64,000 nucleotides of DNA from sequence record NC_048048.2; one strand, given 5' to 3'. Below the pieces are notes generated by a model. It saw only the letters and a program-made list of their open reading frames with translations, did not search any database and was not told the origin of the DNA. The first letter of the stretch is position 1; each line of letters starts with the position of its first letter. Below are positions 43,614 to 63,860 of the stretch, in pieces. A program made the position numbers and the translations under genes.

Positions 43614-43756
43614 GTGTGCGCCTCTCTCGTCTGCCGTGGCCGCTCGCCACGCTTCCTTCATCGCATACAAGAAAACTGTTGCCAAGCCCCAAAGATCGCT
43701 TGACAGCATAAAAGCCCAATGCGACAAGGGGACATCCAAACGGGAGACACCCCCCA

Positions 43757-44329
43757 ATGACCACCGAAACCCTCGACCTCCTCTATCCGGTCCTGATGCT
43801 GGAGCAGAAGATTCCCCACCGCGAAGGCATGTTGCGGCTGGCCATCGTCCTGCGCGACTTCGGCCCCAAGGCGCCCCATCGCTACGTCACCCACCTGCGG
43901 GCTGAAAACCCCGTGCCGGGCTCTGACCACGCCTTCACCTACAGCTATGAGCATGGCACCTATTCGGCCGACCTGCGCCGCGCCCTGGCCGTCTATTTCG
44001 AGCGCGTCACCGAGCGGGTCATGACCGCCATGGTCGTGCTCCACGACCTGCCCGAGGTCGCGCCGCCGGCGCCGACCGTCACCGTGCCGCTCGAACTGGC
44101 CCAGACCGCCTATGGCCTGATCGATGACAACGAACTGGACCTCTCCAAGGCCTGCGGCAACGTCACCTTGGTCGAGGCCGCCATTACCGGTCTGGCCGCC
44201 GTCCTGGGACCGCGCCGCTACTTCCGCGATGTCGAGGAAGGCAACGCCAAGCTTCTGGAGGCCTTCGAAGCCCAGCAAGCCGCGCGTGACGCGGCCCTAG
44301 AAGCCGAATCCGAAGAGGAAGAGGCCTAA
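43757..44329 (+). CDS. cassette gene, hypothetical
   Basis: GGGAGACACCCC leader. Confidence 0.8.
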   Translation: MTTETLDLLYPVLMLEQKIPHREGMLRLAIVLRDFGPKAPHRYVTHLRAENPVPGSDHAFTYSYEHGTYSADLRRALAVYFERVTERVMTAMVVLHDLPEVAPPAPTVTVPLELAQTAYGLIDDNELDLSKACGNVTLVEAAITGLAAVLGPRRYFRDVEEGNAKLLEAFEAQQAARDAALEAESEEEEA

Positions 44330-44499
44330 AAAGCCCGCCCAGGCCTCCCCGGCCTGGGCGTGAGCCCTCCAGGGGCCGTTAAGGTTAACGCCAGGGGCCG
44401 GGACGTTAAGGTTAAGGCCGAAAATAGTGCGAGAAACCTGTTGACACGCATTGCGGCCCTATGCGAGAACAAGGCTCCACTTCATGAGGAGCGCCAAGC

Positions 44500-45126
44500 A
44501 TGGCCCTGCCCGATCACTTCCTGGTTTCCGTCGACGGCTCGCTCTATGACACGCGGGTGCAAGGCTGGAACCAAGCCGCGCCGCTGCGGATCAATTACCG
44601 GATCGTCAATCGCGACATCCACGGCATGAGCGAGGTCAAGGCCGCCTTGCGCTGCGGCGCCTTTACCGACATCGGCGGCTATCCGCTGTATTTCGTCACG
44701 CAGGACGGCCGCGCCCTGTCCTTCGACAGCGCCCGCAAGATGCTCTATCAGATCGCCGACGATTTCCAGCATGGCGCCTCGACCGGCTGGCGGATCACCG
44801 GCGCCCTCATCAACTACGAGGATCACGACCTCGTCTGCGATCACAGCGGCGAGAAGATTCCGGCCGCCTATGATCCGGTGCAATGGGCCGCAGGCTGCAA
44901 TGTCTCGGGCTTCATGCCCGACAGCGAGCCTTCCCACCATGCGACCTGGGAAGAGGCCAAGGAAGACTTGCGCGCCCAGGTCGAACTGGCGCGCGAGCCC
45001 TACGAGATCGGTTCGGACGAGGACGACGCCCTAGCCCGCGTCGCCCGCGCCCTGGAGGCCCTTAAGGAAGGCCAAGAGCTTAACATGGGCGCCATCGGCT
45101 ATCGCTGGTGGGTCGAACGCCTGTAA
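44500..45126 (+). CDS. cassette gene, hypothetical
   Basis: GAGGAG SD; YPLYFVTQDG...CDHSGEKIPAAY. Confidence 0.8.
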   Translation: MALPDHFLVSVDGSLYDTRVQGWNQAAPLRINYRIVNRDIHGMSEVKAALRCGAFTDIGGYPLYFVTQDGRALSFDSARKMLYQIADDFQHGASTGWRITGALINYEDHDLVCDHSGEKIPAAYDPVQWAAGCNVSGFMPDSEPSHHATWEEAKEDLRAQVELAREPYEIGSDEDDALARVARALEALKEGQELNMGAIGYRWWVERL

Positions 45127-45147
45127 ACCAAGGAAAGGACCCCTTCC

Positions 45148-45294
45148 ATGTTCATTCTCATCGTCGGCAATCCCAGCGACGGCTTCACTTATTACGGCCC
45201 CTTCGACGAGCATGACGACGCCGTCACCTATGCCGAGGCGACCGGCACCGAGGGCAACCCCTGGTGGGTCGCGCCCCTGGAAGCGGCGGACTAG
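45148..45294 (+). CDS. 48-aa hypothetical protein
   Basis: AAGGA SD; MFILIVGNPSDGFTYYGPF. Confidence 0.7.
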   Translation: MFILIVGNPSDGFTYYGPFDEHDDAVTYAEATGTEGNPWWVAPLEAAD

Positions 45295-45300
45295 CCCGTC

Positions 45301-45435
45301 ATGACCGCTCTCGAAAAGCGCGGCTACAAGGCCGCCCAGGCGGGCGTCAAGTGGTGGAACAACCCCCACCCCAGCGGCTCCCCGGCCGCCTATCAGTGGG
45401 ACAAGGGCCACACCCGCCACCGCCTCGGACGCTAG
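45301..45435 (+). CDS. 44-aa Rmf/CrpP-like protein
   Basis: KRGYKAAQAG...NPHPSGSPAAYQWDKG. Confidence 0.6.
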   Translation: MTALEKRGYKAAQAGVKWWNNPHPSGSPAAYQWDKGHTRHRLGR

Positions 45436-45614
45436 CCGAGCCCAGGCCTTCGCGCCTGGGCTTTGCCCGCCCCCTGGGCGTTAAGGTTAAGGCCGAAAAT
45501 AGTTCAAGAAACCTGTTGACACGCATCAGGCTCCCATGCGAGAACAGGATCAGACGAAACGACAAGACCACAAAGGAGGCCGCCATGAAGTAGCGACAAT
45601 CTGGAGCACAACTC

Positions 45615-46001
45615 ATGGAATTCTTCGTCCGCACCACGCTGGTCAGCATCGCCCGCCACTGGGAGGACGGCGCCGACGTGATCGCCACCTGCTATTGCGT
45701 CTGTGTCGAGTACCCGGACGGCGCCCGCTATGTCCACGACTATCAGCCGGTCGACCGCTATGTCAGCGCCGACGACGAAGGCGAGCCCATCTATCCCTGG
45801 CGGGACGGCGAGGCCATCAAGGCCAAGCTGGACGCCTTGCGCGATGAGATCGCCGCCCACGTCGCCGCTGGCGGGAGCCTCGATCCTGGCCACTGGTTCG
45901 AGGTCGATCCGCGCTACGGCTCCCCGGCCTATATGGGCCTGGACGCCTTCGGGTTCTTCCGGGCGCGCGAAAAGCAAGAGGCCGCCGAGCGCGGCGACTG
46001 A
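45615..46001 (+). CDS. cassette gene, hypothetical
   Basis: GGAG SD; ...DPRYGSPAY. Confidence 0.8.
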   Translation: MEFFVRTTLVSIARHWEDGADVIATCYCVCVEYPDGARYVHDYQPVDRYVSADDEGEPIYPWRDGEAIKAKLDALRDEIAAHVAAGGSLDPGHWFEVDPRYGSPAYMGLDAFGFFRAREKQEAAERGD

Positions 46002-46008
46002 CACCCAA

Positions 46009-46036
46009 AAGGCCCGCCCATCCGGCGGGCCTTTTT
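46009..46036 (+). terminator. intrinsic terminator
   Basis: AAGGCCCGCC-loop-GGCGGGCCTTTTT. Confidence 0.8.
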
Positions 46037-46055
46037 CCTTGACCACCGCCTGGGG

Positions 46056-46082
46056 TTAACCTTAAGGCCGCGTTAAGGTTAA
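46056..46082. promoter_or_regulatory. extended CtrA-type box (example; exact N7 copies also near 47122, 47797, 49537, 51660, 54325, 56380, 57734, 63014)
   Basis: TTAACC-TTAA-N7-TTAA-GGTTAA. Confidence 0.8.
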
Positions 46083-46183
46083 GCCCGCCCAGGCCCGTAA
46101 AAAGATGCAAGAAACCTGTTGACACGCATGGAAGGCCTATGCGAGAACAGGGCTCAACACCAACGCCAGCCGGGAGACACCCC

Positions 46184-46774
46184 ATGGCCCTCGTCACCGA
46201 ATCCTTTGTCGTCGATCTGGCCTGCGGGCGCGCCCTGACCAACGGCGAGCGCCGCATGGTCGCCGCCGTGATCGACTCGCTTCTCGACCCGCATTTCAAG
46301 TCGACCGCCTGGGTCAAGGGCGGCGACCATCGCGAGGCCGTCCACTACTGCGACCGCGTGACGCCCTACAGCCTGCACGGCGAGAACGCCAACGCCGCGC
46401 GCGTGCGCACCGAGGCCCTGACCACCCGCGACCATGACGCCCCCGTCCTGCTGTCGCTGTCGGTCGGCGACACCATCGGCGAAATCGCCCGCTTCTACAC
46501 CATCGCCGCCGCTGTCGAATATCTCGACGGCAACCCCGATATCGATCCGACCTCGCTGCACATGGGCGCCTACACCATTGACGCCCCGTTCGGCGTGGCC
46601 AATGACATCGAGGCTGACAAGCTCCTCTATGACCTGGGCTATCGCCTGCACGCCATGGCCGGCGGGTCCTGGACCTACAGCGATCCGCAGGGCCGCCTGT
46701 GGGACGGCGGCGGCAAGCGCGAAGCCGTGGTCATGATCGCTCTGAAGCAAGCCGCCGACGCTGAAGAGGCCTAA
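46184..46774 (+). CDS. cassette gene, hypothetical
   Basis: GGGAGACACCCC leader. Confidence 0.8.
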   Translation: MALVTESFVVDLACGRALTNGERRMVAAVIDSLLDPHFKSTAWVKGGDHREAVHYCDRVTPYSLHGENANAARVRTEALTTRDHDAPVLLSLSVGDTIGEIARFYTIAAAVEYLDGNPDIDPTSLHMGAYTIDAPFGVANDIEADKLLYDLGYRLHAMAGGSWTYSDPQGRLWDGGGKREAVVMIALKQAADAEEA

Positions 46775-46779
46775 GGCCC

Positions 46780-47103
46780 GTGAAGCGCCGTCACGCCCTC
46801 TTCCTGTCGGTGATCGCTTCGGCGCCCGACGTGGTGATCCTGCAAGCTCCGGCGCACTTCCTGCGCTGGAGCGACCACCGCAAGGCCATCCTGGCGTTCA
46901 TGCGCCAGACCTACGGCGTCAAGGCCGCCGACGTTCACGCCGTCGAAGGCGTCGCCGGCTATGCCGAACCCGACCCGACCGACGACCCCGCCGTCCTGGC
47001 GCGCTTTCAAGCCGCCTTCGCCGGGTCTGACAACTTCCCCAAGGTCGCCCTGGCGGCCTGGGACGGGCAGGCCTATCGGCTGGTCCGCCGGCCTCTGGCG
47101 TGA
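46780..47103 (+). CDS. hypothetical protein
   Basis: GTG start after upstream stop. Confidence 0.65.
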   Translation: MKRRHALFLSVIASAPDVVILQAPAHFLRWSDHRKAILAFMRQTYGVKAADVHAVEGVAGYAEPDPTDDPAVLARFQAAFAGSDNFPKVALAAWDGQAYRLVRRPLA

Positions 47104-47227
47104 GGCCGCCACCGCCCAGGCTTAACCTTAACGTGGCGTTAAGGTTAAGGCCGAAAATAGTTCAAGAAAGCTGTTGACAGCATAGGAGGCTTATGCGAGA
47201 AAGGCTCATCGAAACGGGAGACACCCC

Positions 47228-47743
47228 ATGGACGACACCTATCCGCCCCTGACCCCCGGCCAGCAAGCCGCCCTGGTCGCCTTCGCCGACCAGCATGGCG
47301 GCCTGGGCGAGGCCTGGAAAGAGGCCCTGAGCGACGCCTGGAGGACGTGCAGCGAGCCCGATGCGCTCAAGGCCGACCTGCGGACCATCCGCAACACCTA
47401 TGGCCCCTCCTGGCTCTATGACGAATACGCCTGGGGCTGGCGCCCGACCCTTCCCGACTGGGAGCGCGCCGGCCGCTGGACCGACACCCCGCCGCAGCCG
47501 ACGCCGGGCAAGGCTCGCTGGAGCGCCGCCTTCGACCCGCCGGCCATCGGCGACCGGGTGCGCGTGACCACCAACGGCCTGGGCTGGGCGCGGGTCACCG
47601 GCTACTTCGTCGAAGCCGACTGGCTGGGCGTGATTGTCAAGCTGGAGGCCCCGGCCGACTGGTATGTCAAACAGAACGGCGGCAACGTCCCCGGCCACAG
47701 CTTCGGGACCGAGATCGCCCTGACCGACCCCGCGACCGACTGA
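47228..47743 (+). CDS. cassette gene, Trp-rich hypothetical with SH3-like C-terminus
   Basis: conserved leader; PAIGDRVRVTTNGLGWARV. Confidence 0.8.
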   Translation: MDDTYPPLTPGQQAALVAFADQHGGLGEAWKEALSDAWRTCSEPDALKADLRTIRNTYGPSWLYDEYAWGWRPTLPDWERAGRWTDTPPQPTPGKARWSAAFDPPAIGDRVRVTTNGLGWARVTGYFVEADWLGVIVKLEAPADWYVKQNGGNVPGHSFGTEIALTDPATD

Positions 47744-47923
47744 CCTGGACGGCCCTGGCTGGGAGACCAGCCGGGGCGAGGCCTAACCCGGCGCGGTTAA
47801 CCTTAACCGCCCATTAAGGTTAACCGCCGGCGCCCTGGGGCGGGCGAAAGAAAATGCAAGAAAACTGTTGACACGCATCTGAGGGCTATGCGAGAAAGGG
47901 CCATCGAACAACGGAGGCCCCTC

Positions 47924-48766
47924 ATGGCCAAGCTATTCAGCGACCTTCAGGACCTTGCCAACTCGACCTATGTCGTGCGCATCGTCGACAATGGCGGCCA
48001 GAGCGCCGACCGCTACACGATCGTCACCGCCGATGGCGACTATTACGCCTACAGCGCCAATCCCGCCCATCCCCAAGGCGTGGGCCTGAGCGGCGAGGGC
48101 ATCGACCCGCAAGTGCTGGTCGACTGGGTGGAGCGCGGCGAAGCCGTCGACCTGACCATCGGCGAGCTACCCGAGGCCGCCGCCCGCTGTCTGCTGGCGT
48201 CGATCAACGCCAGCGTCGAGGACTTCCTGTCGGCTGTCGAGGACCCGACCAGCAACGCCGTGGCCCCGACCCGCGAAAAGGCGGAGATCAATGACGGCGT
48301 GATGGATTGCTTCGGCAAGGGCATCTATCGCGTGGGCGAGGGTTTCGCCGTGCGCATGGATGGCCTGGACGCGGGCGATGATCGCGGCCCCTTCATGAGC
48401 GCTGTCGAGGCGGTCAAGGCCACCCTCCCCGATGAATACGCCTGGGCTGGCGAGGAATACCTGTCGCCGCGCGACATGACCAAGATCACGCCCGAAGCCA
48501 AGCCGCTCGTTCTGGTCCACGCCCTGGAGGCCATTCGCGACTATGAATATCAGCGCGACAACCCCGGCTCGTTCTTCGACGGGCTGAACGAGGACGACAC
48601 TGACGCGGGCCTGGGCATCGTGCGCCGCACGCGCTACCTGTCCAAGGTCACCGATGATGCGACCATCGTCGGGCTGATCGGCGAGGCGCCGGCCTTCGCC
48701 CTGGCCCATGAATGTCTCGACCAACTGTGGACCCTGGCGCAAGAGCGGTGGGAGGCGGGCCAGTGA
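47924..48766 (+). CDS. cassette gene, hypothetical
   Basis: GGAGG SD; RIVDNGGQSADRYTIV. Confidence 0.8.
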   Translation: MAKLFSDLQDLANSTYVVRIVDNGGQSADRYTIVTADGDYYAYSANPAHPQGVGLSGEGIDPQVLVDWVERGEAVDLTIGELPEAAARCLLASINASVEDFLSAVEDPTSNAVAPTREKAEINDGVMDCFGKGIYRVGEGFAVRMDGLDAGDDRGPFMSAVEAVKATLPDEYAWAGEEYLSPRDMTKITPEAKPLVLVHALEAIRDYEYQRDNPGSFFDGLNEDDTDAGLGIVRRTRYLSKVTDDATIVGLIGEAPAFALAHECLDQLWTLAQERWEAGQ

Positions 48767-48966
48767 GCGCCCGCGAACGCCGCGCCCTCTCCGAACTGCT
48801 GGCCCTGTTCCACGCGGTCAACAGCGGCCACGTCAAGGGCCGCAACCCCTACGCCTTCCCGGCCGTCAAGCTCGCCAACGAGGTATTGACGGGCGACCCG
48901 CTGGACGGGGTTTCCACGTCGCCGAAGCCCTGGACCGGCATCGCGAGGCGGACGGCAAGGCCTTGA
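48763..48966 (+). CDS. hypothetical protein
   Basis: GGAGG SD, GTGA overlap. Confidence 0.65.
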   Translation: MSARERRALSELLALFHAVNSGHVKGRNPYAFPAVKLANEVLTGDPLDGVSTSPKPWTGIARRTARP

Positions 48967-49070
48967 TTTTCGAGGTCGGCGGTTGCCCGGACGGCTGCTT
49001 GCTGTCCTACAGCGGCGCGGTTCCGCGCTGCGTCAACTGCGACACCGAATATCCCGAAGAAAACGGTTGA
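48963..49070 (+). CDS. 35-aa Cys-rich peptide
   Basis: TTGA overlap; GCPDGC...RCVNC. Confidence 0.45.
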   Translation: MIFEVGGCPDGCLLSYSGAVPRCVNCDTEYPEENG

Positions 49071-49121
49071 CAGCATAAGGGAGCTATGCGAGAAAGGGTC
49101 ATCAACGGAGACACCCCGCCC

Positions 49122-49262
49122 ATGTGGACCGAAAAGACCTTCAAGACCCGCGCCGCCAAGGAGGCCTGGATCGCCCGCAATGAAGACCGCTATCAGATCG
49201 TCGAGATCGTGGTCTGCAACGCCTACGGCGTGACCTACAAGCCCCTCCGACGCGTCTACTAG
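49122..49262 (+). CDS. 46-aa cassette gene
   Basis: conserved leader; MWTEKTFKTRAAKEAW. Confidence 0.75.
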   Translation: MWTEKTFKTRAAKEAWIARNEDRYQIVEIVVCNAYGVTYKPLRRVY

Positions 49263-49272
49263 GAGACCTCGC

Positions 49273-49464
49273 ATGATCCCCGACTCGGTCCGTAACCCGC
49301 AAGATCATTGGACCCCCATCGCCACCCGCGCCAAGGCTGACGCCCTGGCCTATCGCTACAACCAAGATGACGCCGGCCCCGGCCTCTACGAGGTCCACGA
49401 AAAGGGCGAAAGCTTCGCCATCGCCTACTATGACGAAGACGGCGCCTTCTGCGGCTACGTCTAA
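49273..49464 (+). CDS. 63-aa hypothetical protein
   Basis: AGGAG SD. Confidence 0.75.
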   Translation: MIPDSVRNPQDHWTPIATRAKADALAYRYNQDDAGPGLYEVHEKGESFAIAYYDEDGAFCGYV

Positions 49465-49481
49465 CCCGCTCCTGTCAACTT

Positions 49482-49518
49482 GAAGGCCGGCGCCGCTCTC
49501 CTGGCGCCGGCCTTTTTC
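49482..49518 (+). terminator. intrinsic terminator
   Basis: AAGGCCGGCGCC-loop-GGCGCCGGCCTTTTT. Confidence 0.85.
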
Positions 49519-49673
49519 TTGCCCGCCGCCTGGGTCTTAACCTTAAGGCGAGATTAAGGTTAACGCCGCCTTAAGGTTAACCGGTGCCCCGCATCCCGCC
49601 CGGATGCAAAAAACCTGTTGACACGCATTTCGACCCTATGCGAGAAAGGCGACGAACACGGGAGACACCCCTT

Positions 49674-50672
49674 ATGACCACGACCATTCCCGGCGCCGAG
49701 CATACGATGATCGGACAAGCCGCCTATCGCTCGACCAAGCGCCCCGACCAAGTGCGCGAGATGGCCTATGGCGCGTTCCCGGCCGCGACGTCGGACTCGC
49801 CCTTCGCCGTCAAGCCGGCCTGTGGCAAGGTCCCGAGCGCGCGCGTGCTGGAGGACTTCGACCCCGCCGACGTCTTCACGACCAGAGCCAATGATCGCGG
49901 CGGCTTCTATGCCTCCGCCAACTTCGGCGGCTCTGAGGTGTCGTGGATCAGCATCGCCGGCTATGGCGACACCGAGGAGGCCGCCCGCGCCGATCTCATG
50001 GCCCGGTTCATCGCCGACCGCGACGGCAAGGGCAAATTTGGCCCTCACCATCCCCTGGTCGGCTATGACTGGGGCTATAAGCTCGCCCCGTTCTGGGACA
50101 TGCTGGAGCGCGAGGCCGCCATTCGCCAGCCCTTCAAGCGCCAGCTTTACCTGGGCAAGCTGAAGTCCGGCCGCCCTAATCCCAAGGGCTTTGACGTGTT
50201 CGTCGATGTCGAATGGACCGGCGTGCGCCTGTCGCTGTCGGGCGTCATCGGCCCCAAGGCCAATGGCAACGCCTGGGACGGCGCAGGCCAGATCGTCGGC
50301 AGTCTCAAGCGCAAGGACTTTCTGGAGTTCGCCCCGTCCTGGCATTATGGATCGGCCCTTGACGGTCTGGTCCAGGCCTGGACCCGCTGGCACCTGAACG
50401 ACCTGCGCGCCGGCACGCTTCGGCAGGAAGACCACCTGCGCGGCTATGAGGCCAAGCGCAACATTGAGCAGGCCAAGGCCGCCGGCGCCCATTCTCTCGA
50501 CGCCACCCGCGCCGAACTGGCGCGCGTCCATATGGAGCCCGACACCTGGGAGCGCCACAACGGCCGGCCCTATAGCTACGGCTCCGCATGGCTTCGCGAG
50601 GAGGTCCCCACCTACGTTCTCGACTTCCTGCGCAATCTCCCCGCCCCCACCAAAATCAGCCCCTGGAGGTAA
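49674..50672 (+). CDS. cassette gene, hypothetical multidomain
   Basis: conserved leader; WTRWHLNDLRAG...YSYGSAWLREEVP. Confidence 0.8.
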   Translation: MTTTIPGAEHTMIGQAAYRSTKRPDQVREMAYGAFPAATSDSPFAVKPACGKVPSARVLEDFDPADVFTTRANDRGGFYASANFGGSEVSWISIAGYGDTEEAARADLMARFIADRDGKGKFGPHHPLVGYDWGYKLAPFWDMLEREAAIRQPFKRQLYLGKLKSGRPNPKGFDVFVDVEWTGVRLSLSGVIGPKANGNAWDGAGQIVGSLKRKDFLEFAPSWHYGSALDGLVQAWTRWHLNDLRAGTLRQEDHLRGYEAKRNIEQAKAAGAHSLDATRAELARVHMEPDTWERHNGRPYSYGSAWLREEVPTYVLDFLRNLPAPTKISPWR

Positions 50673-50679
50673 CCCGCCC

Positions 50680-51114
50680 ATGGCCATCAACACCGCCGGC
50701 CTCGTCGGCAAGCTCAAGGAAGCCCTCGCCGCCGCCCCCAACCTGACCCTATGGGCCAAGGAACGCGGCCTCTTCCATCAGAACGTTTCGGCCGCCGCGC
50801 GCGGCGACACCGTGCCGCAAGAAAGCATCGCCAAGGCCCTGGGCTTCCGACGCGTCCACGTCCAGGCCTATCTGGCGCCGGGCGAAGCCCTGCCGCTCCT
50901 GCCGCCCGGCTGGGAGGAGGTGCTTCCCGGTTCGGCGACCCCGGTCGACTGGAAGCCCCGCGACAAGGCCGCCGCCCCCGCCCCGCGCCGGGTCGGTTCG
51001 CCCGACCAGATGGCCAAGGCCCGCGACGCGCGCCGGCCGCGTTCCGCGCCGGTCCAGCCCCCGGCCCAAACCGCCGGCAAGCCTCGCCGCAAGAAAGTGC
51101 AAGAAACCGGTTGA
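50680..51114 (+). CDS. XRE/Cro-type HTH protein
   Basis: NLTLWAKERGLFHQNVSAAARGDTVPQESIAKALGF. Confidence 0.7.
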   Translation: MAINTAGLVGKLKEALAAAPNLTLWAKERGLFHQNVSAAARGDTVPQESIAKALGFRRVHVQAYLAPGEALPLLPPGWEEVLPGSATPVDWKPRDKAAAPAPRRVGSPDQMAKARDARRPRSAPVQPPAQTAGKPRRKKVQETG

Positions 51115-51374: not shown

Positions 51375-51390
51375 CAGAGGAGGCGCCGCT

Positions 51391-56362: not shown

Positions 56363-56419
56363 GTCCGGTCCGATCGGGATTAACCTTAACGAGAGATTAA
56401 GGTTAACGCGCCCTTAAGG

Positions 56420-56665
56420 TTAACTGGTGGCGTTCTTGCGCGTCGTGGCCTGGGGATTGGCCTTGAGCCATGCGTCGGCTTCCGTGCGGGTCGAGAACGG
56501 CGCCCCGCCAATGCCCTGCGTGCCGTCATCCCATTGAATGGTCCAACCCACGTCCTTGATTTCCCAATCCTCCGCCACGCCATGGGGAATCGGCGTATGA
56601 AGCGCGATGCGGGTAAAGGGCGCGCGCTTGAGTTGACGGATGCGCGCCGGAATGACTTGCGGCAT
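56420..56665 (-). CDS. 81-aa hypothetical protein on the minus strand
   Basis: AAGGA SD; own minus-strand promoter TTGACA(56744)-N16-TACATT. Confidence 0.75.
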   Translation of the reverse strand: MPQVIPARIRQLKRAPFTRIALHTPIPHGVAEDWEIKDVGWTIQWDDGTQGIGGAPFSTRTEADAWLKANPQATTRKNATS

Positions 56666-56843
56666 GTGTGGAATTTCCTTGACAAAGGCCTTGCCCCATG
56701 GGCGGCCCGAAAGGCGAATGTAGCAAGCGGCGCTTTCGTGTCAAGAAATGCGACATGGGCTAGAATCCTGTTGACACGCATTGCGGTCCTATGCGAGAAA
56801 GATCGGGCAAAGGCGCATCCCGCGCCGCTGGGAGACACCCCGC

Positions 56844-57614
56844 ATGGACCTGACCACCTTTACGGCCAAGGCTGATTTCGTGCTCTGCAATGAGCCGGTG
56901 ACCATCACCGTCAAGCCCGCCGGCCGCCCGCTCTACCTGTCGTTTTCCATCGACCAGATCGGCATGATCGGCGGCGCCGAGGAGCTTTACGCCAAGGCCG
57001 AACAACACGGCGTCGAGGACCTGATAACGGTTCTCAACATTTCCAACGTCCTGTCGCTGAAGTCCATCGAGACCTATGACGACGAAGACCGCGAGGCCGT
57101 CGAAAGCCTGCGCTACGCCCTGCTCATGCTCGACGGCGAGCGCTACGCTTCGGATGTCCAGTTCGAGGACGTGGACGAGGCCGAGTTTTCCAACCGCGAC
57201 GACACCATTGACAGCCGGCAAATCGTCGAGCGGGTCGAGGTGCTTCGGAGCGCCCTGGAAACCGCCGGCTTCGACACCGCCGACCTGTCCGCCCTGGAAG
57301 ACCTCGACGCCGACGAAGCCGTCAAGGACGCCGACCAGCGCGACGCCTTCAACGCCATCCGCGAGGAATTCCTGATCCTGGCGCGCATGGTCGAGGAGGG
57401 CGGCAACTACGGCGAGGATTGGCGGTTCGGCGCGACTCTGGTCCGCGAATCCTACTTCACCGAGTTCGCGCAAGAAGAGTGCGAAAGCCTGGGCTTCATC
57501 TCCAAGGACTTCCCGTCCTGGATCGCCATCGACTGGGAAAAGACCGCCGAAACGATGCTACACGACTACACCGAAATCGACTTCGACGGCGTGAGCTACT
57601 ACGTCCGCGCCTAG
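56844..57614 (+). CDS. acidic ArdA-like antirestriction/DNA-mimic protein
   Basis: D/E-rich; C-terminal YFTEFAQE...SWIAIDWEKTAETMLHDYTEIDFDGVSYY resembles the ArdA C-terminal IDYExxARDL pattern. Confidence 0.55.
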   Translation: MDLTTFTAKADFVLCNEPVTITVKPAGRPLYLSFSIDQIGMIGGAEELYAKAEQHGVEDLITVLNISNVLSLKSIETYDDEDREAVESLRYALLMLDGERYASDVQFEDVDEAEFSNRDDTIDSRQIVERVEVLRSALETAGFDTADLSALEDLDADEAVKDADQRDAFNAIREEFLILARMVEEGGNYGEDWRFGATLVRESYFTEFAQEECESLGFISKDFPSWIAIDWEKTAETMLHDYTEIDFDGVSYYVRA

Positions 57615-57677: not shown

Positions 57678-57716
57678 ACCCGGCCGGCGTCCATGACCTG
57701 GGCGCCGGCCTTTTCT
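57678..57716 (+). terminator. intrinsic terminator
   Basis: GGCCGGCG-loop-CGCCGGCCTTTT. Confidence 0.75.
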
Positions 57717-57774
57717 TACCGCGCCGATCGGGGTTAACCTTAACGCCGTCTTAAGGTTAACGGCGGGCCTGGAG

Positions 57775-57877
57775 GCGAGGGCGTCAAGGCCGCGAGCTAG
57801 GATTACACGCGATGGCTTAGCCGGCGTCCAGCCGGCGGCGCCTTCGACCACCGCGAGGCGGCCTTGACCCTCGCAAT
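57775..57877 (-). ncRNA. candidate structured ~100-nt small RNA
   Basis: 17-bp closing stem with a 2-nt bulge, 9-bp inner stem with G-U pairs only on the minus strand, GCCGGC hairpin; minus-strand TTGACA-N16-CGAGAT promoter at 57903-57876. Confidence 0.6.
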
Positions 57878-57988
57878 CTCGCCGATCCGCGACCAAGTGT
57901 CAACCGTTTTCTTTTTCCAAGAAACCTGTTGACACGCATCGAACGCCTATGCGAGAAAGACTCAACGTCAACGCCTGGAACCCTATCC

Positions 57989-58645
57989 ATGCCCCGCACC
58001 GTCACCAAACAGGTCTACACCTTCAAGGAACTGAATCCCAAGGCCAAGCAAAAGGCCATCGAGTGGTATCGTGGCCTGAACGATCAAGACTCCGGTTGGT
58101 GGGATTTCGTCTATGACGAAGCCGACCGCATCGCCGAAGCCTTCGGGATCACCCTGCGCCGCAAGGAAGCCGGCAAGCCCAATAGCGGCCCGGACATCAT
58201 GTTCACCGGCTTCTGGAGTCAAGGCGACGGCGCCTGTTTCCAAGGCCGCTACGAGTCGCCCCAAACCCCGGCCGTCGAAGCCTTCGCCGCCCTGGGGATC
58301 GAAGACGCCACGCTCAAGGCTCTGGCCGCCCGCCTCGACGCCCTGAGCGCCAAGGTGCGCTTGATCAGCACGGTCAAGCACTCCGGTCACTACTATCACG
58401 AGTATTGCACCGACTTCGAAACCGAGCGCATGGTTCCCGACGACGCCGGCGACGACTTCGATATCTACGATTTCGACCACGAGGACGAAAAGGAACTGAT
58501 CGACATTCTTCGCAGCTTCATGAAGTGGATTTATCGCCAGCTTGAGGCCGTGGACGAAGATCGCAATTCCGATGAGACGATCAGCGAAACCCTGACCGAC
58601 TCCGATTACGAATTCGAGGCGGACGGCTCGCCGACCAACGACTAG
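57989..58645 (+). CDS. acidic cassette gene of a widespread mobile-element family
   Basis: VYTFKEL...AKQKAIEW...WWDFVY...FTGFWSQGDGACF...YEFEADG. Confidence 0.8.
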   Translation: MPRTVTKQVYTFKELNPKAKQKAIEWYRGLNDQDSGWWDFVYDEADRIAEAFGITLRRKEAGKPNSGPDIMFTGFWSQGDGACFQGRYESPQTPAVEAFAALGIEDATLKALAARLDALSAKVRLISTVKHSGHYYHEYCTDFETERMVPDDAGDDFDIYDFDHEDEKELIDILRSFMKWIYRQLEAVDEDRNSDETISETLTDSDYEFEADGSPTND

Positions 58646-58700: not shown

Positions 58701-58819
58701 CAAGGTCCTGTTAAGGTTAACGAAAAAAGCCCTCGGACGGCCTGAGAAAAACGCAAGAAAACTGTTGACACGCATCCAAGCCCTATGCGAGAAAGGCTCA
58801 TCGCAACGGGAGACACCCC

Positions 58820-59107
58820 ATGACGACCCAAGCCAAGAAGCGCCGCAAGCGCTACCCGCCCAAGAGCGACGCGGCCAAGGCCCGCGCCGCCGCCAAGAGC
58901 AAGGCGTTCTTCGCCCGTCACGCGCTCAAGGCCACCGAGGCCACGATTGCCGCCATGAAGGCCGGCGATCAAAAGGCCGTCCAACGCCACGCCAAGGACG
59001 CCCGGCGCCTGACCCGCTGGATGAACCACAAGCGCGACATCGCCGCCGCCTTCGCGGCCGTCTTCAACATTCGGGCCGCCGCCCAAGCCCTGAGAGCCGC
59101 CGCATGA
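58820..59107 (+). CDS. basic Ala/Lys/Arg-rich cassette gene
   Basis: conserved leader. Confidence 0.8.
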   Translation: MTTQAKKRRKRYPPKSDAAKARAAAKSKAFFARHALKATEATIAAMKAGDQKAVQRHAKDARRLTRWMNHKRDIAAAFAAVFNIRAAAQALRAAA

Positions 59108-59319
59108 CCCGTCGCCCTGCCTTTCTGACCGTCCTGGGCGGGATTGGCCTCATCCTGGCCAGCTTCGTCCTTTCGGCCGCCAGCGCCCCGGAAAAGCGGG
59201 TTCTCGTGGGTCAATACTGCGACGGCGACCCCGTGCGCCTCTACGGCCTGGAAGACGGCGAGGAAGCCGCGCAAGCGTGCGCCATCGTCGAAGTCCACGC
59301 CCTGCCCAAGGGCTTCTGA
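59104..59319 (+). CDS. small secreted or membrane protein
   Basis: MTRRPAFLTVLGGIGLILASFVLSAASA; two Cys. Confidence 0.65.
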   Translation: MTRRPAFLTVLGGIGLILASFVLSAASAPEKRVLVGQYCDGDPVRLYGLEDGEEAAQACAIVEVHALPKGF

Positions 59320-59321
59320 CC

Positions 59322-59579
59322 ATGGCCGCCCCGAACGACAGCCGCGAGGAGCCGGTCAAGGTCGAAGACCTCAAGGGCGGCATGATGTGCGATCTTGAGG
59401 GCGACATGTACGCCGACAACGCCGGGCGCTTCCCGGAATTCGAGTTCGCCTATGCCGTCGTCGTCGAAGTCGACACGGCCCCGCGCTACGAGGCGCCGGG
59501 GACGGTCCTGGTCGAGTTCGACAAGATCACCGTGGCCTTTCCCAAGGGCCACACCCTGCCGACCATCAAGGAACCCTAG
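59322..59579 (+). CDS. hypothetical protein
   Basis: coupled ORF. Confidence 0.75.
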   Translation: MAAPNDSREEPVKVEDLKGGMMCDLEGDMYADNAGRFPEFEFAYAVVVEVDTAPRYEAPGTVLVEFDKITVAFPKGHTLPTIKEP

Positions 59580-59581
59580 AC

Positions 59582-60115
59582 ATGGAACGCCTCAACGTCC
59601 ACGTGCTGACCGTCACCTATGACAGCGGCAACCCCGTCCCGCCGTTCGTCGCCCTGGGCATGTCCAAGGAGGAACTTGACGACACCCTGGAGGCCCTGGC
59701 GCGCGAGGAAGTCGATAACCGCTATTTCGAGGAAGAAGACCTCTTAGACGACCTCGCCAAGTTCCTGACCGCCGAACGCGTCGCCGAGCTTGAGCCCCTG
59801 GGCCTGGACGCCATCGGCCTACTGACTCCGGTCGAAATCGTCGACATGGCCAAGCGCTTCGCCTCGATCACGCCAAGCTTTGACGTGCTCCCGCTCTACC
59901 GCGACCCGCCGCCCGTCCGCGCCTTCGATCTCGACGACCGCGAAGCCGCCGCCGTCCTGACCGGCCTGCGCATGATCCAAGCCCAAGGCGTCCCGGACGA
60001 TCTCGACGACCTCGCCACCAATGGCGGCGCCTTCGAGCCCCTGGACGGCGACGCCATCGACGGGCTCTGTGTGCGGATCAATTTCGACGTGACCGGCGAG
60101 GCGCCGGCCTCCTGA
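59582..60115 (+). CDS. acidic hypothetical protein
   Basis: AAGGA SD. Confidence 0.75.
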   Translation: MERLNVHVLTVTYDSGNPVPPFVALGMSKEELDDTLEALAREEVDNRYFEEEDLLDDLAKFLTAERVAELEPLGLDAIGLLTPVEIVDMAKRFASITPSFDVLPLYRDPPPVRAFDLDDREAAAVLTGLRMIQAQGVPDDLDDLATNGGAFEPLDGDAIDGLCVRINFDVTGEAPAS

Positions 60116-60195
60116 CGCAAGAAAGCTGTTGACAGCATAATCCGCCTATGCGAGAAAAGGCTGTCAACGGCGATCCCCGCCGCATGGAGACACCC

Positions 60196-60540
60196 ATGAA
60201 GTTCATCAAGACCGACATCCTCGACCACGGCCGCGCCTCGACCCTGCGCAACGCCCTGGGCACGGCCCTGGAGCGCTACACCGAAATCGGCAAGGAATTC
60301 GAGGGCTACCTGAACGACTATCAGGCCCTGGACGAGGCGGGCAAGGAAGCCTGGAAGGCCCGCAACCACTGGATCAACCCGCGCGCCCTGCCCGACCTCA
60401 AGACCCAGTTCGAGCGCCAAGCCGCCGACGTGCAAGACCTCATCAACTGGCTTGACGGCGACAAGTTCATGAACGAAGACGGCGATTTCCCCAAAGGGAC
60501 CGAGTTCACCATTGTCGCCGGCCTGATCCGCGACTTCTAA
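60196..60540 (+). CDS. cassette gene, hypothetical
   Basis: GGAGACACCC leader. Confidence 0.8.
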   Translation: MKFIKTDILDHGRASTLRNALGTALERYTEIGKEFEGYLNDYQALDEAGKEAWKARNHWINPRALPDLKTQFERQAADVQDLINWLDGDKFMNEDGDFPKGTEFTIVAGLIRDF

Positions 60541-60550: not shown

Positions 60551-60579
60551 CAAGGCCCGCCCTCACGGCGGGCCTTTTC
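60551..60579 (+). terminator. intrinsic terminator
   Basis: AAGGCCCGCC-loop-GGCGGGCCTTTT. Confidence 0.8.
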
Positions 60580-60734
60580 CTTGACCTCGCGCCGTTGTTA
60601 ACCTTAACGTGCAATCGTTCGCCTGTTAACCTTAACGGGACATGCCTGATCCGTTAACCATAGCCTGCAAAAAAGCTGTTGACTCGCATCCAAGCCCTAT
60701 GCGAGAAAGGGTCATCAGCAACGGGAACGATCCC

Positions 60735-61133
60735 ATGACCCAAGAATACACCGCCGAAGAACGCCAAGCCAAGTTGACCGAAATGGCCGATCACTGGCGC
60801 GAGCAACTGAAGGACGCCCAAGCCCGCCTGGACATGACCGTCCTCGTCGGTCAAGGATTCGTCTGCGCTCTGGAGCGCGATCTTTCCATGGCTATCCGCG
60901 CTGACGGTCCCGACCGCTATCGCCTGTGGCCAGTATCGGCGCGCATGGTTCCCATCCTCCACTTCACCAAACTTGACGCCATGCGGGTCGCCGCGCACTG
61001 GAATGGCAACCTCCCCGACGATAAGCAGGACCTGCGAGTCGTCGCCACCCATTACCGCGACGTGCTTCAAGCCTATGTCGAGACCGCAACGGCGCAAATC
61101 GCCTGGATCGAAGGCGGCTGCAAGGCCGCCTGA
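60735..61133 (+). CDS. cassette gene, hypothetical
   Basis: GGGA SD after promoter. Confidence 0.8.
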   Translation: MTQEYTAEERQAKLTEMADHWREQLKDAQARLDMTVLVGQGFVCALERDLSMAIRADGPDRYRLWPVSARMVPILHFTKLDAMRVAAHWNGNLPDDKQDLRVVATHYRDVLQAYVETATAQIAWIEGGCKAA

Positions 61134-61323
61134 CCTTGACGCCCTCCGGCTCCGGCCGGAGGGTTAATTTCTGCCCAGCCCGCGTTAAGGTTAACCCGCC
61201 GCCGGCCTGGGATTAACCTTAACCCGCAACCGTTTGCGGGTTAACCATTCGATGCAAGAAAGGTGTTGACACGCATTTAGGCCCTATGCGAGAAACGCCT
61301 ATCAGCAACCGGGAAACACCCCC

Positions 61324-61887
61324 ATGCCGCAATTCGTTCTCGACACTTCGGGCAAGGCCCGTGTTGGCGCCACCAAGAATTTTCCGAACGGCGTCACCAT
61401 CAACTGGAATGATCTCGACGCCTTCACCCAAGGCTATATCGAGGCGCTGTTTTTCACCGAAAATTCCCCGGCCTTCACGTCGGACGAATGGCACGGCGAG
61501 GAATGTCAAGCCGCGCTTGAGGCCGGCACGTCTGACGGCTCGCTCCCCGGTGACGCCGGTTTCGCCGACCTTCATGAAACCGCCCTGGCCACCATCGTCG
61601 AGGAGTGCGCCGCCTTCCAACGCGAAAACGCCGACCTGTTGGCGCAAGCCTATGGCCACAACTTCCCGGCGCGGGTGATCGGCGACGGCACCTTGCCCGA
61701 TTCCCACCGCCCGGCGTGGGACTATGACGAGGCGGCGGCGGGGCGGGATTTCTGGTACACTCGCAACGGCCATGGCGTCGGCTTTTGGGATCGCGGCCTA
61801 GGCGAGGTCGGCGACAAGCTTTCCGACGCCTGCCGTTACTCTGAGGTTTACGTGTCGTTCGAGGCTGACGGCAAGGTTCATCTCTAA
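61324..61887 (+). CDS. cassette gene, conserved phage hypothetical
   Basis: conserved leader; FTQGYIEAL...GRDFWYTRNGHGVGFWDR. Confidence 0.8.
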   Translation: MPQFVLDTSGKARVGATKNFPNGVTINWNDLDAFTQGYIEALFFTENSPAFTSDEWHGEECQAALEAGTSDGSLPGDAGFADLHETALATIVEECAAFQRENADLLAQAYGHNFPARVIGDGTLPDSHRPAWDYDEAAAGRDFWYTRNGHGVGFWDRGLGEVGDKLSDACRYSEVYVSFEADGKVHL

Positions 61888-61893
61888 CCCGGC

Positions 61894-61921
61894 AAAGGCC
61901 CGCTTGACAGCGGGCCTTTTT
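61894..61921 (+). terminator. intrinsic terminator
   Basis: AAAGGCCCGCT-TGAC-AGCGGGCCTTTTT. Confidence 0.85.
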
Positions 61922-62049
61922 CGTGCCTGCCCCACCTGGGTTAACCTTAACGCCAGCCCGCTTCGCCTTAACGCTCTTTTTGCAAGAAAACAGTTGACTC
62001 GCATCCAAGCCCCATGCGAGAAAAGGTCATCAACCACGGAGCGCCGCAC

Positions 62050-62424
62050 ATGGCCAAAACCGAAACCGTCGACCTCGCCCTGGTCATGCTCGATGAGCAA
62101 AAGGCCGCCCTGGGCGCCTCCCGGACCTTCACCTTTCACGAAGTCCGCGCGGCGTTCATCGACGCCAAGGCCCTGACCACGCTTGAGGCCACCTTGCACA
62201 AGATCGCTGAACACGAGTGCAACGGCTATCGCAGCGACATCACCGAACGTTTCGACATCCGCCGCCGCGACAAGGCGCAAGCCGCCGCCACGGCCATTGC
62301 CGAGCGCTACGGCCTGACGCTCGATTTCAACGGCGACCCGCGCGGTTCGGCCCTGAAGATCAAGACCCCGCACACCGGCCGTTACAACGGCTTTGGCGGG
62401 CGTGAGGATGGATGGTGCGTCTAG
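62050..62424 (+). CDS. cassette gene, hypothetical
   Basis: GGAG SD; IAEHECNG...FNGDPRG. Confidence 0.8.
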   Translation: MAKTETVDLALVMLDEQKAALGASRTFTFHEVRAAFIDAKALTTLEATLHKIAEHECNGYRSDITERFDIRRRDKAQAAATAIAERYGLTLDFNGDPRGSALKIKTPHTGRYNGFGGREDGWCV

Positions 62425-62493
62425 CGCCATCCTGACCCCCTTCCACCCCCTGTAGCGCGTCCCTCTCAAACCCCTGGCCCTAGGAGACACCCC

Positions 62494-62664
62494 ATGGCCC
62501 GCACCACCACCCACACCCGCACCGACAAGGCCAAGCGCGAGACGCTGGCGCCGTGGGAATATGACCGCCAGCACAAGGCGGACAAGAAAGCCGCCAAGGC
62601 GTGGCGCACCGATCGCCAAGGCCGCCGCGCCCTGGCCTCTTCGGACGCCTTCAAGGCCCACTAG
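62494..62664 (+). CDS. 56-aa basic protein
   Basis: AGGAGACACCCC leader; MARTTTHTR. Confidence 0.7.
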   Translation: MARTTTHTRTDKAKRETLAPWEYDRQHKADKKAAKAWRTDRQGRRALASSDAFKAH

Positions 62665-62757
62665 GCGGGCTCGAAAAAAGTTCGGCTCGATGCGAGAAAG
62701 CTGTTGACTCGCATCGAGCCCCTATGCGATAAAGGGTCATCAAACGGAGACACCGAC

Positions 62758-62922
62758 ATGACCCACCTGCAACGCGCCACCACCGACCAAGTCACCGTCG
62801 AGCACTACGCCGTTTCGGGCGGTCAACTGACCGTCACCCGCGCCCCCGCCCGCGCCCCGATCTATCGCCTGAACGGCTTCAAGATCACCTACTTCGAGGC
62901 CAAGCGTAAGCTCGCCGCCTAA
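62758..62922 (+). CDS. 54-aa cassette gene
   Basis: conserved leader. Confidence 0.75.
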   Translation: MTHLQRATTDQVTVEHYAVSGGQLTVTRAPARAPIYRLNGFKITYFEAKRKLAA

Positions 62923-62936
62923 GACCCCTCCCCGAT

Positions 62937-62966
62937 AAGGCCCCCTCCCTGGAGCGGGGCCTTTTT
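62937..62966 (+). terminator. intrinsic terminator
   Basis: AAGGCCCC...GGGGCCTTTTT. Confidence 0.7.
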
Positions 62967-63156
62967 CGTGGCCGTTAGCCAAGCGTTAAGGTTAACCCGT
63001 AGGGTTGATTTCGTTAACCTTAATGGGGCGTTAAGGTTAACGGGCCGGCCCAGGCTGTTAACCCTGCGGGCGAAGAAAGTGCGATCCTGTGCAAGAAAGC
63101 TGTTGACTGCATAAGCGTCCTATGCGACAAAGGGTCATCAACAACGGAGCTACCCG

Positions 63157-63327
63157 ATGTCCTTCCGCCTGACCCTCACTGACGAAGCCCGCTTCACCGC
63201 CGCGCGCGGCGCGGTCCGCACCGTCCGCGAACAGGCCCGCCCTGAGCCGGCCAAGGACGGCTCGGGCAAGTACGTCCTGGCCTCGCAAGACGCTCTGTCG
63301 CGCATCCGCGCCGTGCTGGGCAACTAA
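63157..63327 (+). CDS. 56-aa cassette gene
   Basis: GGAG SD after promoter. Confidence 0.7.
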   Translation: MSFRLTLTDEARFTAARGAVRTVREQARPEPAKDGSGKYVLASQDALSRIRAVLGN

Positions 63328-63330
63328 GCC

Positions 63331-63516
63331 ATGAAGGTCACGGCGCACTATGGCAACGGGCTCTCGCGGGTGATCCCCTGCGAGACGCCGCAAGCCGCTC
63401 TGGACGCGATCAAAGCCGCGCTGCGCTATGATCGTTCGGCGACCTTCACGGTTGACAAGCGCCTCACCCAAGGCGCGCCGACCCGCGCGGCCTCCGAACG
63501 GGTTTGGCTGCTGTAG
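63331..63516 (+). CDS. 61-aa hypothetical protein
   Basis: coupled ORF. Confidence 0.65.
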   Translation: MKVTAHYGNGLSRVIPCETPQAALDAIKAALRYDRSATFTVDKRLTQGAPTRAASERVWLL

Positions 63517-63602
63517 AAGAAAAAAGCGAGTCGACGCAAAAAAGCTGTTGACTCGCATAAGGCCCGTATGCGATAAAAGGTCATCAGCAACGGAGACACC
63601 CG

Positions 63603-63800
63603 ATGACCTTCCACCACACCATGATGAGCAAGCTGGACGCGGCCCAACAGTCGGGCGAACTGTCCTATGCCCAGCACGCCGACATGCGCGCCACCCTGCG
63701 CGAGGCGAACATGCGCGGTCAGGTCTTCACCTCGATGATCGAACTGCGCCAAGCCTGCAAGGGCGCGGGCCGCGACTATCAGGGCCGCTTCGCCAGCTAA
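63603..63800 (+). CDS. 65-aa cassette gene
   Basis: conserved leader. Confidence 0.75.
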   Translation: MTFHHTMMSKLDAAQQSGELSYAQHADMRATLREANMRGQVFTSMIELRQACKGAGRDYQGRFAS

Positions 63801-63833
63801 GGCGGCCCAAACCCTCCCAAAGCCCCGACCCCT

Positions 63834-63860
63834 AGGCCCGCCCTTCGAGGCGGGCCTTTT
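63834..63860 (+). terminator. intrinsic terminator
   Basis: AGGCCCGCC-CTTCGA-GGCGGGCCTTTT. Confidence 0.85.

Follow-up and report, generated by a model that had tools for sequence, protein, structure and literature searches.

A 23-unit array of small-gene cassettes sharing one promoter sequence in the terminal repeat of Caulobacter phage CcrSC

Elements of the cassette array

The window analyzed here, 64,000 nucleotides (nt) long, is the last 64 kb of the 317,489-bp genome of Caulobacter phage CcrSC (MH588547.2, Bertelyvirus SC; 100% identity), a jumbo siphophage of the genus Bertelyvirus in the Dolichocephalovirinae. Between positions 43700 and 63860 it carries an array of 23 co-oriented units, or cassettes, which together hold 41 annotated plus-strand genes encoding 44 to 332 amino acids, with one to four genes per unit. 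GenBank lists every gene of the array as hypothetical, and no paralogs were detected among the 41 cargo genes at E<1e-3. The array falls entirely within the right direct terminal repeat of the phage, a plus-strand repeat_region of 23,946 bp in MH588547.2 (window 40055–64000, record 293544–317489), and the identical sequence is found at the left end of the record. An initial annotation, made from the letters of the window alone, had delimited an array of about 23 cassettes at 43700–63860 and likened it to phage terminal-repeat regions; the count of promoter units and the GenBank feature bear out both its extent and its location.

The units are recognized by their promoter. The pattern TTGAC-N(12-18)-ATGCGANAA has 23 matches in the window, all on the plus strand and all between 43700 and 63576, with none in 1–43699 and none on the minus strand. 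The element TGCGAGAA occurs 26 times where 2.5 occurrences are expected, and the leader GGGAGACACCCC, allowing at most one mismatch, occurs nine times (0.64 expected), always right before a start codon; this ‘leader’ is a ribosome-binding site of the Shine-Dalgarno type. It is very unlikely that the excess of these elements arose by chance, and the repeating unit of terminator, TTAA box, promoter, leader, and one to four unrelated genes, which the initial annotation had read as a single regulatory code across the array, is real, with the same promoter in all 23 units.

Column counts over the 23 copies define a conserved promoter block of ~52 bp that begins 13 nt 5' of TTGAC and extends ~10 nt past the 28/29-mer promoter unit. 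Sequence comparison indicates that the -35 element, TTGAC plus two bases, fits the consensus of Caulobacter sigma-73 promoters (-35 TTGaCgS, -10 GCtANAWC; PMC13004042, PMC8144410). We infer that the GCGAGAAA block is the -10 element: it matches five of the seven specified positions of the published consensus, and its sole variable column corresponds to the N. The spacer is 17–18 in hexamer terms, with a TG just upstream of the -10, and a conserved TCATC block lying 5–9 nt past the GCGAGAAA block is likely to be the start region. Start codons follow 25–44 nt after the promoter unit, mostly 25–30 nt, in every cassette except cassette 20. Upstream of the -35, positions -10 to -5 are A in 18–23 of 23 copies, save for a G-dominated column at -8, and the A run directly 5' of the -35 is almost invariant. 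The spacer of all 23 units (e.g., 47174–47201) also holds a conserved dyad with arms of 4–5 bp, which goes beyond what the sigma-73 consensus requires and may be an operator for some further factor.

The same kind of promoter is found in the terminal repeats of six relatives (CcrBL9, RB23, BL47, J4, C1, and C2), at 22–32 copies per repeat, and never beyond the repeat in the 32 kb fetched per genome; repeat length among relatives ranges from 22.3 to 30.2 kb. In IMG/VR a loose form of the pattern was swamped by chance single matches, and a stricter one was used; this specific form was found only in CcrSC and CcrBL9, with 25 matches in CcrSC where two repeat copies predict 26.

A tool scan for terminators gave a count not above shuffled expectation, so a stricter hairpin rule was applied. 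This rule places eight terminators on the plus strand of the array, whereas the first 43 kb has none; one further terminator from the tool scan (57682–57710) brings the number of strong intrinsic terminators to nine, and nine units end in one. They lie 78–120 nt upstream of promoters; 14 promoters have no terminator and eight have no TTAA box, as the initial annotation had noted for some cassettes. In eight of nine cases the first TTAA 10-mer begins 21–25 nt after the terminator stem, whereas the distance from box to promoter varies from 25 to 117 nt. This difference in spacing implies that the array is built of two repeated modules, one of terminator, linker, and box, and one of promoter and leader.

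The TTAA box is a 10-mer, TTAACCTTAA (TTAA-N2-TTAA), present on either strand in 38 copies (0.00 expected), all inside the terminal repeat. It lies no more than 140 nt upstream of 15 of the 23 promoters. The spacing typical of CtrA sites, TTAA-N7-TTAA, occurs 13 times in the window against 0.01 expected, 12 of them in the repeat and one in the other 40 kb (29252–29266). These 12 canonical CtrA boxes arise mostly from two 10-mers that face each other 17 bp apart, and they are intergenic except where they overlap gp531c. An RNA-hairpin role for the inverted pair was ruled out, many copies being single or in direct orientation. The initial annotation had recognized a genuine repeated element and had missed its nature as a CtrA-type operator, which passages of Mascolo et al. 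(2022; PMC9437464), on ‘lytic deferment’, describe for this phage group. According to those passages, the terminal repeats of phiCbK-like phages, with CcrSC named among them, hold clusters of predicted CtrA sites; CtrA binding and activation were shown for the phiCbK gp5 and gp18 promoters, and for these only; and motility genes form the ancestral CtrA regulon. The phiCbK repeat has its own repeated promoter of ~60 bp, in which a CtrA box takes the place of the -35 (locus L008, 2384–9511). The subfamily as a whole therefore has a repeated promoter code in its terminal repeats, with a sequence that differs by genus.

The exact composite of two facing 10-mers with an inner N7 site was found in IMG/VR in CcrSC (16 copies, eight per repeat and none elsewhere in this genome), in CcrBL9, and in seven unrelated uncultivated phage contigs of 48–66% G+C that do not carry the CcrSC promoter. 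Facing 10-mers at 17 bp are the commonest arrangement in those seven contigs as well, and the bases flanking the 10-mer are purine and pyrimidine in at least 100 of 101 copies. In GTDB, searched with one genome per species, the composite is absent from Caulobacter and present in the flagellin gene cluster of eight Methylopila/Hansschlegelia genomes, lying 55–83 nt upstream of the flagellin start in at least five of the eight (L038, 2414–2440; L040, L042, L045, and L046). Because motility belongs to the ancestral CtrA regulon, this position supports a CtrA-type operator. The first seven bases of an extended 12-mer are also the start of the predicted SciP motif (PMC4083442), and a literature search for the 10-mer returned nothing relevant. 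Upstream CtrA sites are able to delay a promoter as well as to activate it, as at pilA (PMC11264516), so the putative CtrA regulation in CcrSC could be of either sign.

The cassettes, their cargo, and the flanking region

All 23 cassettes lie on the plus strand. Cassette 1 (43700–44329) consists of promoter 43700–43727 and gp505 (43757–44329). Cassette 2 (44379–45435) opens with two direct TTAA 10-mers (44379 and 44406), followed by promoter 44441–44469 and three genes, gp506 (44500–45126), gp507 (45148–45294), and gp508 (45301–45435), and cassette 3 (45481–46001) has a single 10-mer at 45481, promoter 45516–45544, and gp509 (45615–46001). Cassette 4 (46011–47103) has terminator 46011–46031, an inverted box pair at 46056–46082, promoter 46119–46147, gp510 (46184–46774), and gp511 (46780–47103). 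Box pairs also precede the promoters of cassette 5 (47122–47743; pair 47122–47148, promoter 47174–47201, gp512 47228–47743) and cassette 6 (47797–48966; pair 47797–47823, promoter 47868–47896, gp513 47924–48766, gp514 48763–48966). Cassette 7 (49067–49464), which stands first in the array in RB23, comprises promoter 49067–49094, gp515 (49122–49262), and gp516 (49273–49464).

Cassette 8 (49485–51114) has terminator 49485–49512, three 10-mers at 49537–49580, promoter 49618–49646, gp517 (49674–50672), and gp518 (50680–51114). The promoter of cassette 9 (51111–51603), at 51111–51138, overlaps the gp518 stop, and the unit carries gp519 (51165–51374) and gp520 (51391–51603) with neither box nor terminator. 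Cassette 10 (51611–53759) has terminator 51611–51630, a box at 51660–51680, promoter 51726–51754, and gp521 to gp524 (51780–53759); cassette 11 (53947–54269) has only promoter 53947–53974 and gp525 (54003–54269). In cassette 12 (54282–55586), terminator 54282–54304, box pair 54325–54351, and promoter 54424–54451 precede gp526 to gp529 (54480–55586). Cassette 13 (55637–56311) holds a 10-mer at 55637, promoter 55662–55690, and gp530 (55730–56311), with a different cargo gene at this place in CcrBL9. Next to it is the gp531c region (56380–56665, minus strand), where gp531c (56420–56665) is the only minus-strand open reading frame of the array and three TTAA 10-mers (56380–56423) overlap its 3' end. 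A near-consensus sigma-70-type site on the minus strand, from 56744 to 56717, points at gp531c, and relatives have a minus-strand open reading frame at the equivalent position.

Cassette 14 (56771–57614) contains promoter 56771–56799 and gp532 (56844–57614), and cassette 15 (57682–58645) contains terminator 57682–57710, box pair 57734–57760, promoter 57929–57957, and gp533 (57989–58645). Four genes, gp534 to gp537 (58820–60115), follow the 10-mer at 58711 and promoter 58765–58793 of cassette 16 (58711–60115), and promoter 60129–60156 of cassette 17 (60129–60540; gp538 60196–60540) begins 13 nt past the gp537 stop. Three successive units begin with a terminator: cassette 18 (60554–61133; terminator 60554–60574, 10-mers 60598 and 60626, promoter 60679–60707, gp539 60735–61133), cassette 19 (61142–61887; terminator 61142–61163, 10-mers 61185 and 61213, promoter 61266–61294, gp540 61324–61887), and cassette 20 (61897–62664; terminator 61897–61916, 10-mer 61941, promoter 61994–62022, gp541 annotated at 62014–62424, gp542 62494–62664). 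The annotated gp541 start at 62014 falls inside promoter 20; translation more likely begins at an ATG near 62050, whose spacing from the promoter is the usual one. The array closes with cassette 21 (62704–62922; promoter 62704–62732, gp543 62758–62922), cassette 22 (62986–63516; 10-mers 62986, 63014, and 63031, promoter 63103–63130, gp544 63157–63327, gp545 63331–63516), and cassette 23 (63548–63800; promoter 63548–63576, gp546 63603–63800), which has two paralogous copies in RB23 and is amplified in BL47. The last terminator of the array by the strict hairpin rule lies beyond it on the plus strand, at 63835–63856, and is followed by a T run.

The cargo is largely without recognizable function. 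All 45 repeat-encoded proteins were compared with Pfam, NCBIfam, and PHROGs, and 30 were scanned individually. Pfam and NCBIfam gave no family above cut-off; 19 PHROGs families match repeat-encoded proteins, nearly all of unknown function. No recombinase family and no DNA-binding family was found among these proteins, nor any match to a known anti-defense family in the three databases. Sequence searches of the PDB with gp513, gp517, gp533, and gp540 returned nothing significant, and gp516 is the only cargo protein with a homolog in the phiCbK repeat.

The family of gp533 occurs widely, both in phages and in mobile-element islands of alphaproteobacteria (L167, L171) in which antirestriction and toxin-antitoxin genes are found as well. 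The protein has about 235 relatives; many are alphaproteobacterial, and NCBI labels these ‘antitoxin of toxin-antitoxin stability system’. The Paracoccus and Brucella homologs are flanked by a ParB_N protein on one side and a large AAA_34/helicase protein on the other, and those of Paracoccus also have an antirestriction gene, PIN/MazE, ParDE, and a nuclease as neighbors. By analogy, this setting resembles the anti-defense leading regions of plasmids (PMC11541004). The structural model of gp533 is confident (predicted local distance difference test, pLDDT, 93.4); it has no fold match in the PDB and matches uncharacterized viral proteins only, and the conserved residues of the family are His131, His137, Cys140, and Asp80. 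The genomic context of gp533 is a single circumstantial pointer that hints at an anti-defense role of the array, and a role of the cargo in host takeover or counter-defense is plausible.

Left of the array, and still inside the repeat, is a gene-free region of 1.4 kb (42286–43699, plus strand). It contains ~10 iterons of ~26 bp, each starting TTGACGC (42560–43110), seven exact TTAA 10-mers, mostly in direct orientation (43134–43359), A-tracts phased at 10 bp (43363–43424), and a hairpin plus T run (43460–43485), and it looks like a control region for an origin, packaging, or DNA entry. Six TTGAC words occupy the analogous spot in phiCbK. The left boundary of the repeat (40055) falls inside the large terminase gene (38002–40818); in phiCbK the large terminase gene is likewise reported to lie across the terminal-repeat boundary (PMC3556154). 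An Rfam search of 40000–64000 found no family.

Comparison with related phages

The initial annotation had proposed that the repeats act as recombination joints through which cassettes are gained, lost, and shuffled, and had suggested alignment across related phages as a check. The alignments support this only in part. The cassette order is permuted in RB23; CcrSC and CcrBL9 are colinear, and some breakpoints have no repeat.

RB23 shares 79% identity with CcrSC, and its cassettes run 7, 2, 1, 4, 3, new, 5, 6, 8, 9, and onward in CcrSC numbering. For cassette 7, which has moved, the alignment opens with the initial base of its promoter and stops just short of the promoter that follows (49066–49584). 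Among CcrSC/RB23 homology blocks of at least 240 bp, 6 of 19 start no more than 25 nt upstream of TTGAC, against 3.2% expected (p=2e-5), and between CcrBL9 and RB23 5 of 22 block starts lie at promoters (p=6e-4); these figures are to be read with the caveat that, all promoters being alike, any block that reaches a promoter extends through it.

More recent events are seen among five near-identical relatives. BL47 differs from the other four by three tandem duplications, two of which have their junctions in promoter-bearing repeats: one of 1428 bp, with its junction in a ~75-bp repeat spanning the promoter, and one with an 885-bp unit in five copies, bounded by a 330-bp repeat of promoter plus paralog. 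Apart from the BL47 duplications, the sole indel of at least 9 bp across 25 kb of these five repeats is a 17-bp unit of a TTAA box pair, present in C1, C2, J4, and BL47 and missing from RB23 (L003, about 4014).

CcrBL9 is closer to CcrSC (88% identity). Eight genes differ between the two, gp507–gp508, gp511, gp530, and gp536 in CcrSC and three in CcrBL9. Certain homology limits between them coincide with promoters: homology stops at the end of promoter 19 (61294), and around promoter 3 an island of 190 bp retains 91% identity, while the cargo shares only 42% of residues.

The promoter copies themselves change in concert within a lineage. At two columns CcrSC has T in 20 and G in 19 of its 23 copies, with about the same counts in CcrBL9, whereas RB23 has C at both, in 14 and 17 of its 22 copies; at most 1 in 2000 label permutations reached this excess.

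Interpretation and known systems

We propose that the array is an expression region driven by host RNA polymerase, probably early in infection, and that homologous recombination between its repeats occurs as a by-product; we put the probability of this reading at roughly 0.7. In this model host sigma-73 polymerase would fire all 23 units without any phage factor, with transcription starting about 6–8 nt past the GCGAGAAA block, within the conserved TCATC block, and the terminators would insulate adjacent units. Given 23 direct copies of ~50–150 bp of regulatory sequence, ordinary homologous recombination among them would be expected to duplicate, delete, reorder, and homogenize cassettes. Such plasticity would be a by-product, as in the promoter-early stem-loop (PeSL) cassettes of T4-type phages, and would need no dedicated integron-like machine.

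A number of observations weigh against this reading. We infer promoter use, start sites, and timing in CcrSC from sequence, and a scan for E. coli-type promoters flagged none of the 23 sites, although such a scan misses them because their -10 differs from TATAAT. Recognition by sigma-73 leaves the dyad in the spacer unexplained. The TTAA boxes stand at no fixed helical phase in their 25–117 nt upstream of the promoters, eight of which are boxless, and the tested phiCbK promoters, where the box replaces the -35, differ in architecture from those of CcrSC; since CcrSC combines a consensus -35 with upstream boxes, the regulatory outcome in phiCbK is not directly transferable. The recombination proposed in the initial annotation also has results against it: all genes shared by CcrSC and CcrBL9 are colinear, and gp536 (59322–59579), absent from CcrBL9, is a gene-exact indel within an operon and has no repeat. 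Of the BL47 duplications, the remaining one covers 454 bp, two genes exactly, with no flanking homology, and the amplification in this phage could in principle be an assembly artifact. The 3' ends of homology blocks do not cluster at promoters. Differential genes adjoin an intergenic (promoter) region in 13 of 18 cases, where 34 of 41 are expected by position, which is no enrichment, and concerted change could reflect co-evolution with a trans-acting factor instead of gene conversion. The repeats thus have the BL47 junctions, the RB23 permutation, the block starts, and the concerted change in favor of their being recombination joints, and the CcrBL9 colinearity, the gene-exact indels, the absence of enrichment, and the 3' block ends against it.

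Several other explanations account for parts of these data. The repeats could be expression signals only, with the differences among phages due to plain mosaicism, that is, to illegitimate recombination followed by selection for intact units. The gene-exact indels without flanking homology (gp536 and the 454-bp duplication) and the absence of enrichment beside repeats would suit this view; two of the three recent BL47 duplications have junction homologies of 75 bp and 330 bp, however, the only small indel among the five near-identical relatives falls in a TTAA box, and promoter copies change in concert, so that we regard mosaicism alone as rather doubtful. At the opposite extreme, the boundary repeats would exist in order to be recombination joints of an integrase-free, integron-like anti-defense library, as the initial annotation had suggested. 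Rearrangements are associated with repeats, promoter copies change together, and the homologs of gp533 near antirestriction and toxin-antitoxin genes in Paracoccus and Brucella elements recall plasmid leading regions (PMC11541004). The integron likeness itself did not survive: neither a recombinase nor an attC-like site was found, each cassette has its own promoter, and Pfam, NCBIfam, and PHROGs gave no known anti-defense family for the 45 repeat-encoded proteins. Given also that CcrSC and CcrBL9 are fully colinear, that gene gain and loss is not enriched beside repeats and is at times gene-exact without one, and that the ordinary expression role of every repeat suffices for its conservation, we consider such a library unlikely. 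A possibility that we hold tentatively combines elements of both regulation and exchange: the array would be a self-shuffling early-gene library gated by the host cell cycle, in which an operator of four half-sites recruits CtrA, and perhaps SciP, to time the 23 sigma-73 promoters, while gene conversion and unequal exchange among promoter modules and terminator-box modules keep the code uniform and turn over orphan cargo that is partly counter-defense.

Two further doubts concern the elements themselves. The TTAA 10-mers might be bound not by CtrA but by another factor (SciP, MucR, a nucleoid protein, or a phage protein), or might serve replication, packaging, or DNA entry. The repeated unit is indeed TTAA-N2-TTAA, with 38 copies against only 12 of the N7 form; its resemblance to the start of the predicted SciP motif (PMC4083442), its fixed distance to terminators and not to promoters, and the seven exact copies beside iterons and phased A-tracts in the gene-free region all fit such a role. 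The favored 17-bp inverted pair nevertheless creates an exact TTAA-N7-TTAA, in CcrSC and in unrelated phages alike, an identical composite stands upstream of flagellin genes, a classic class of the CtrA regulon, and CtrA binding in phiCbK repeats was shown experimentally, as passages of PMC9437464 report, which makes a function apart from CtrA improbable. More improbable still is that the promoters are other than simple early host promoters. For this one can cite the dyad, present in 23 of 23 copies though the sigma-73 consensus does not require it, and the two promoter columns with a concerted shift in the RB23 lineage, which is what co-evolution with a trans-acting factor predicts; but both the -35 and the -10 agree with the sigma-73 consensus, the arms of the dyad measure only 4–5 bp, the concerted shift within the -10 affects the column that the consensus leaves as N, and the repeat-encoded proteins yielded no DNA-binding family. 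A host-driven expression region with recombination as its by-product remains the reading we favor.

The resemblance to integrons extends to the ordered array of small, unrelated, co-oriented gene cassettes. CcrSC differs in having no integrase, attC, or attI, in giving each cassette its own promoter where an integron has one common promoter, in that its repeated elements are terminators and TTAA boxes, and in that its recombination appears to be ordinary homology-based exchange.

The T5 pre-early region and the SPO1 host-takeover module combine long direct terminal repeats with strong host-recognized promoters and many small genes of the host-takeover type. Input from a host cell-cycle regulator is no feature of T5 or SPO1, and two-step DNA entry is not known for CcrSC. 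No sequence or family link to either system was found, and no cargo protein matched any named family. The leading regions of conjugative plasmids (PMC11541004) also place co-oriented, early-expressed small genes at a DNA end, and the gp533 family is shared with leading-region-like islands; they belong to a different kind of element, and the CcrSC promoters are double-strand, not single-strand, promoters.

The phiCbK-like repeats belong to the same subfamily and, according to passages of PMC9437464, have TTAA-N7-TTAA sites concentrated between the genes of the repeat, where they precede genes with no known function. CcrSC differs from phiCbK in having a consensus -35 and composite 10-mer boxes that lie further upstream and are tied to terminators. 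The clustering of CtrA sites in these repeats is thus already known from those passages, which do not describe the 23-fold promoter, the composite box, or the cassette rearrangements. Apparently new are a 23-fold promoter code of sigma-73 type that is confined to Bertelyvirus repeats; the composite box, with its fixed tie to terminators and its identity to an operator of flagellin genes; the change of promoter copies in concert; and the cassette duplications and permutations documented here. If our reading is correct, all terminal-repeat genes of this 317-kb phage are under the control of one short promoter code combined with a host cell-cycle operator, and one of the cargo families is linked to leading-region islands of conjugative elements. 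The 23 near-identical strong Caulobacter promoters, with and without CtrA-type boxes, would then constitute a comparative set on how upstream CtrA modulates a consensus promoter.

The closest precedent, also for the proposed mechanism, is the PeSL cassettes of T4-type phages (PMC2839356, PMC4122927). These combine many copies of a strong early promoter of host type, preceded at the -35 by an A/T-rich tract, with terminator stem-loops; their neighbors are small orphan genes in the genome region of greatest plasticity, and the indels, replacements, and duplications that distinguish relatives have their joints in the repeats. CcrSC shares the A/T-rich tract, the orphan genes in a variable region, and a promoter that, by its sequence, matches sigma-73 in 23 copies. 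It departs from PeSL in that the enrichment of gene gain and loss beside repeats is not seen, in that its terminators lie 78–120 nt upstream of the promoter and not within it, in the addition of host CtrA-type boxes, and in that the array is one 20-kb run in the terminal repeat of a Dolichocephalovirinae siphophage, with promoters of sigma-73 form. Were the array a self-shuffling library, it would join a PeSL-like evolvability device to host developmental sensing; if the reading we favor holds, modular shuffling of the PeSL type would occur not only in T4-type myoviruses but also in an unrelated phage lineage, and in terminal repeats.

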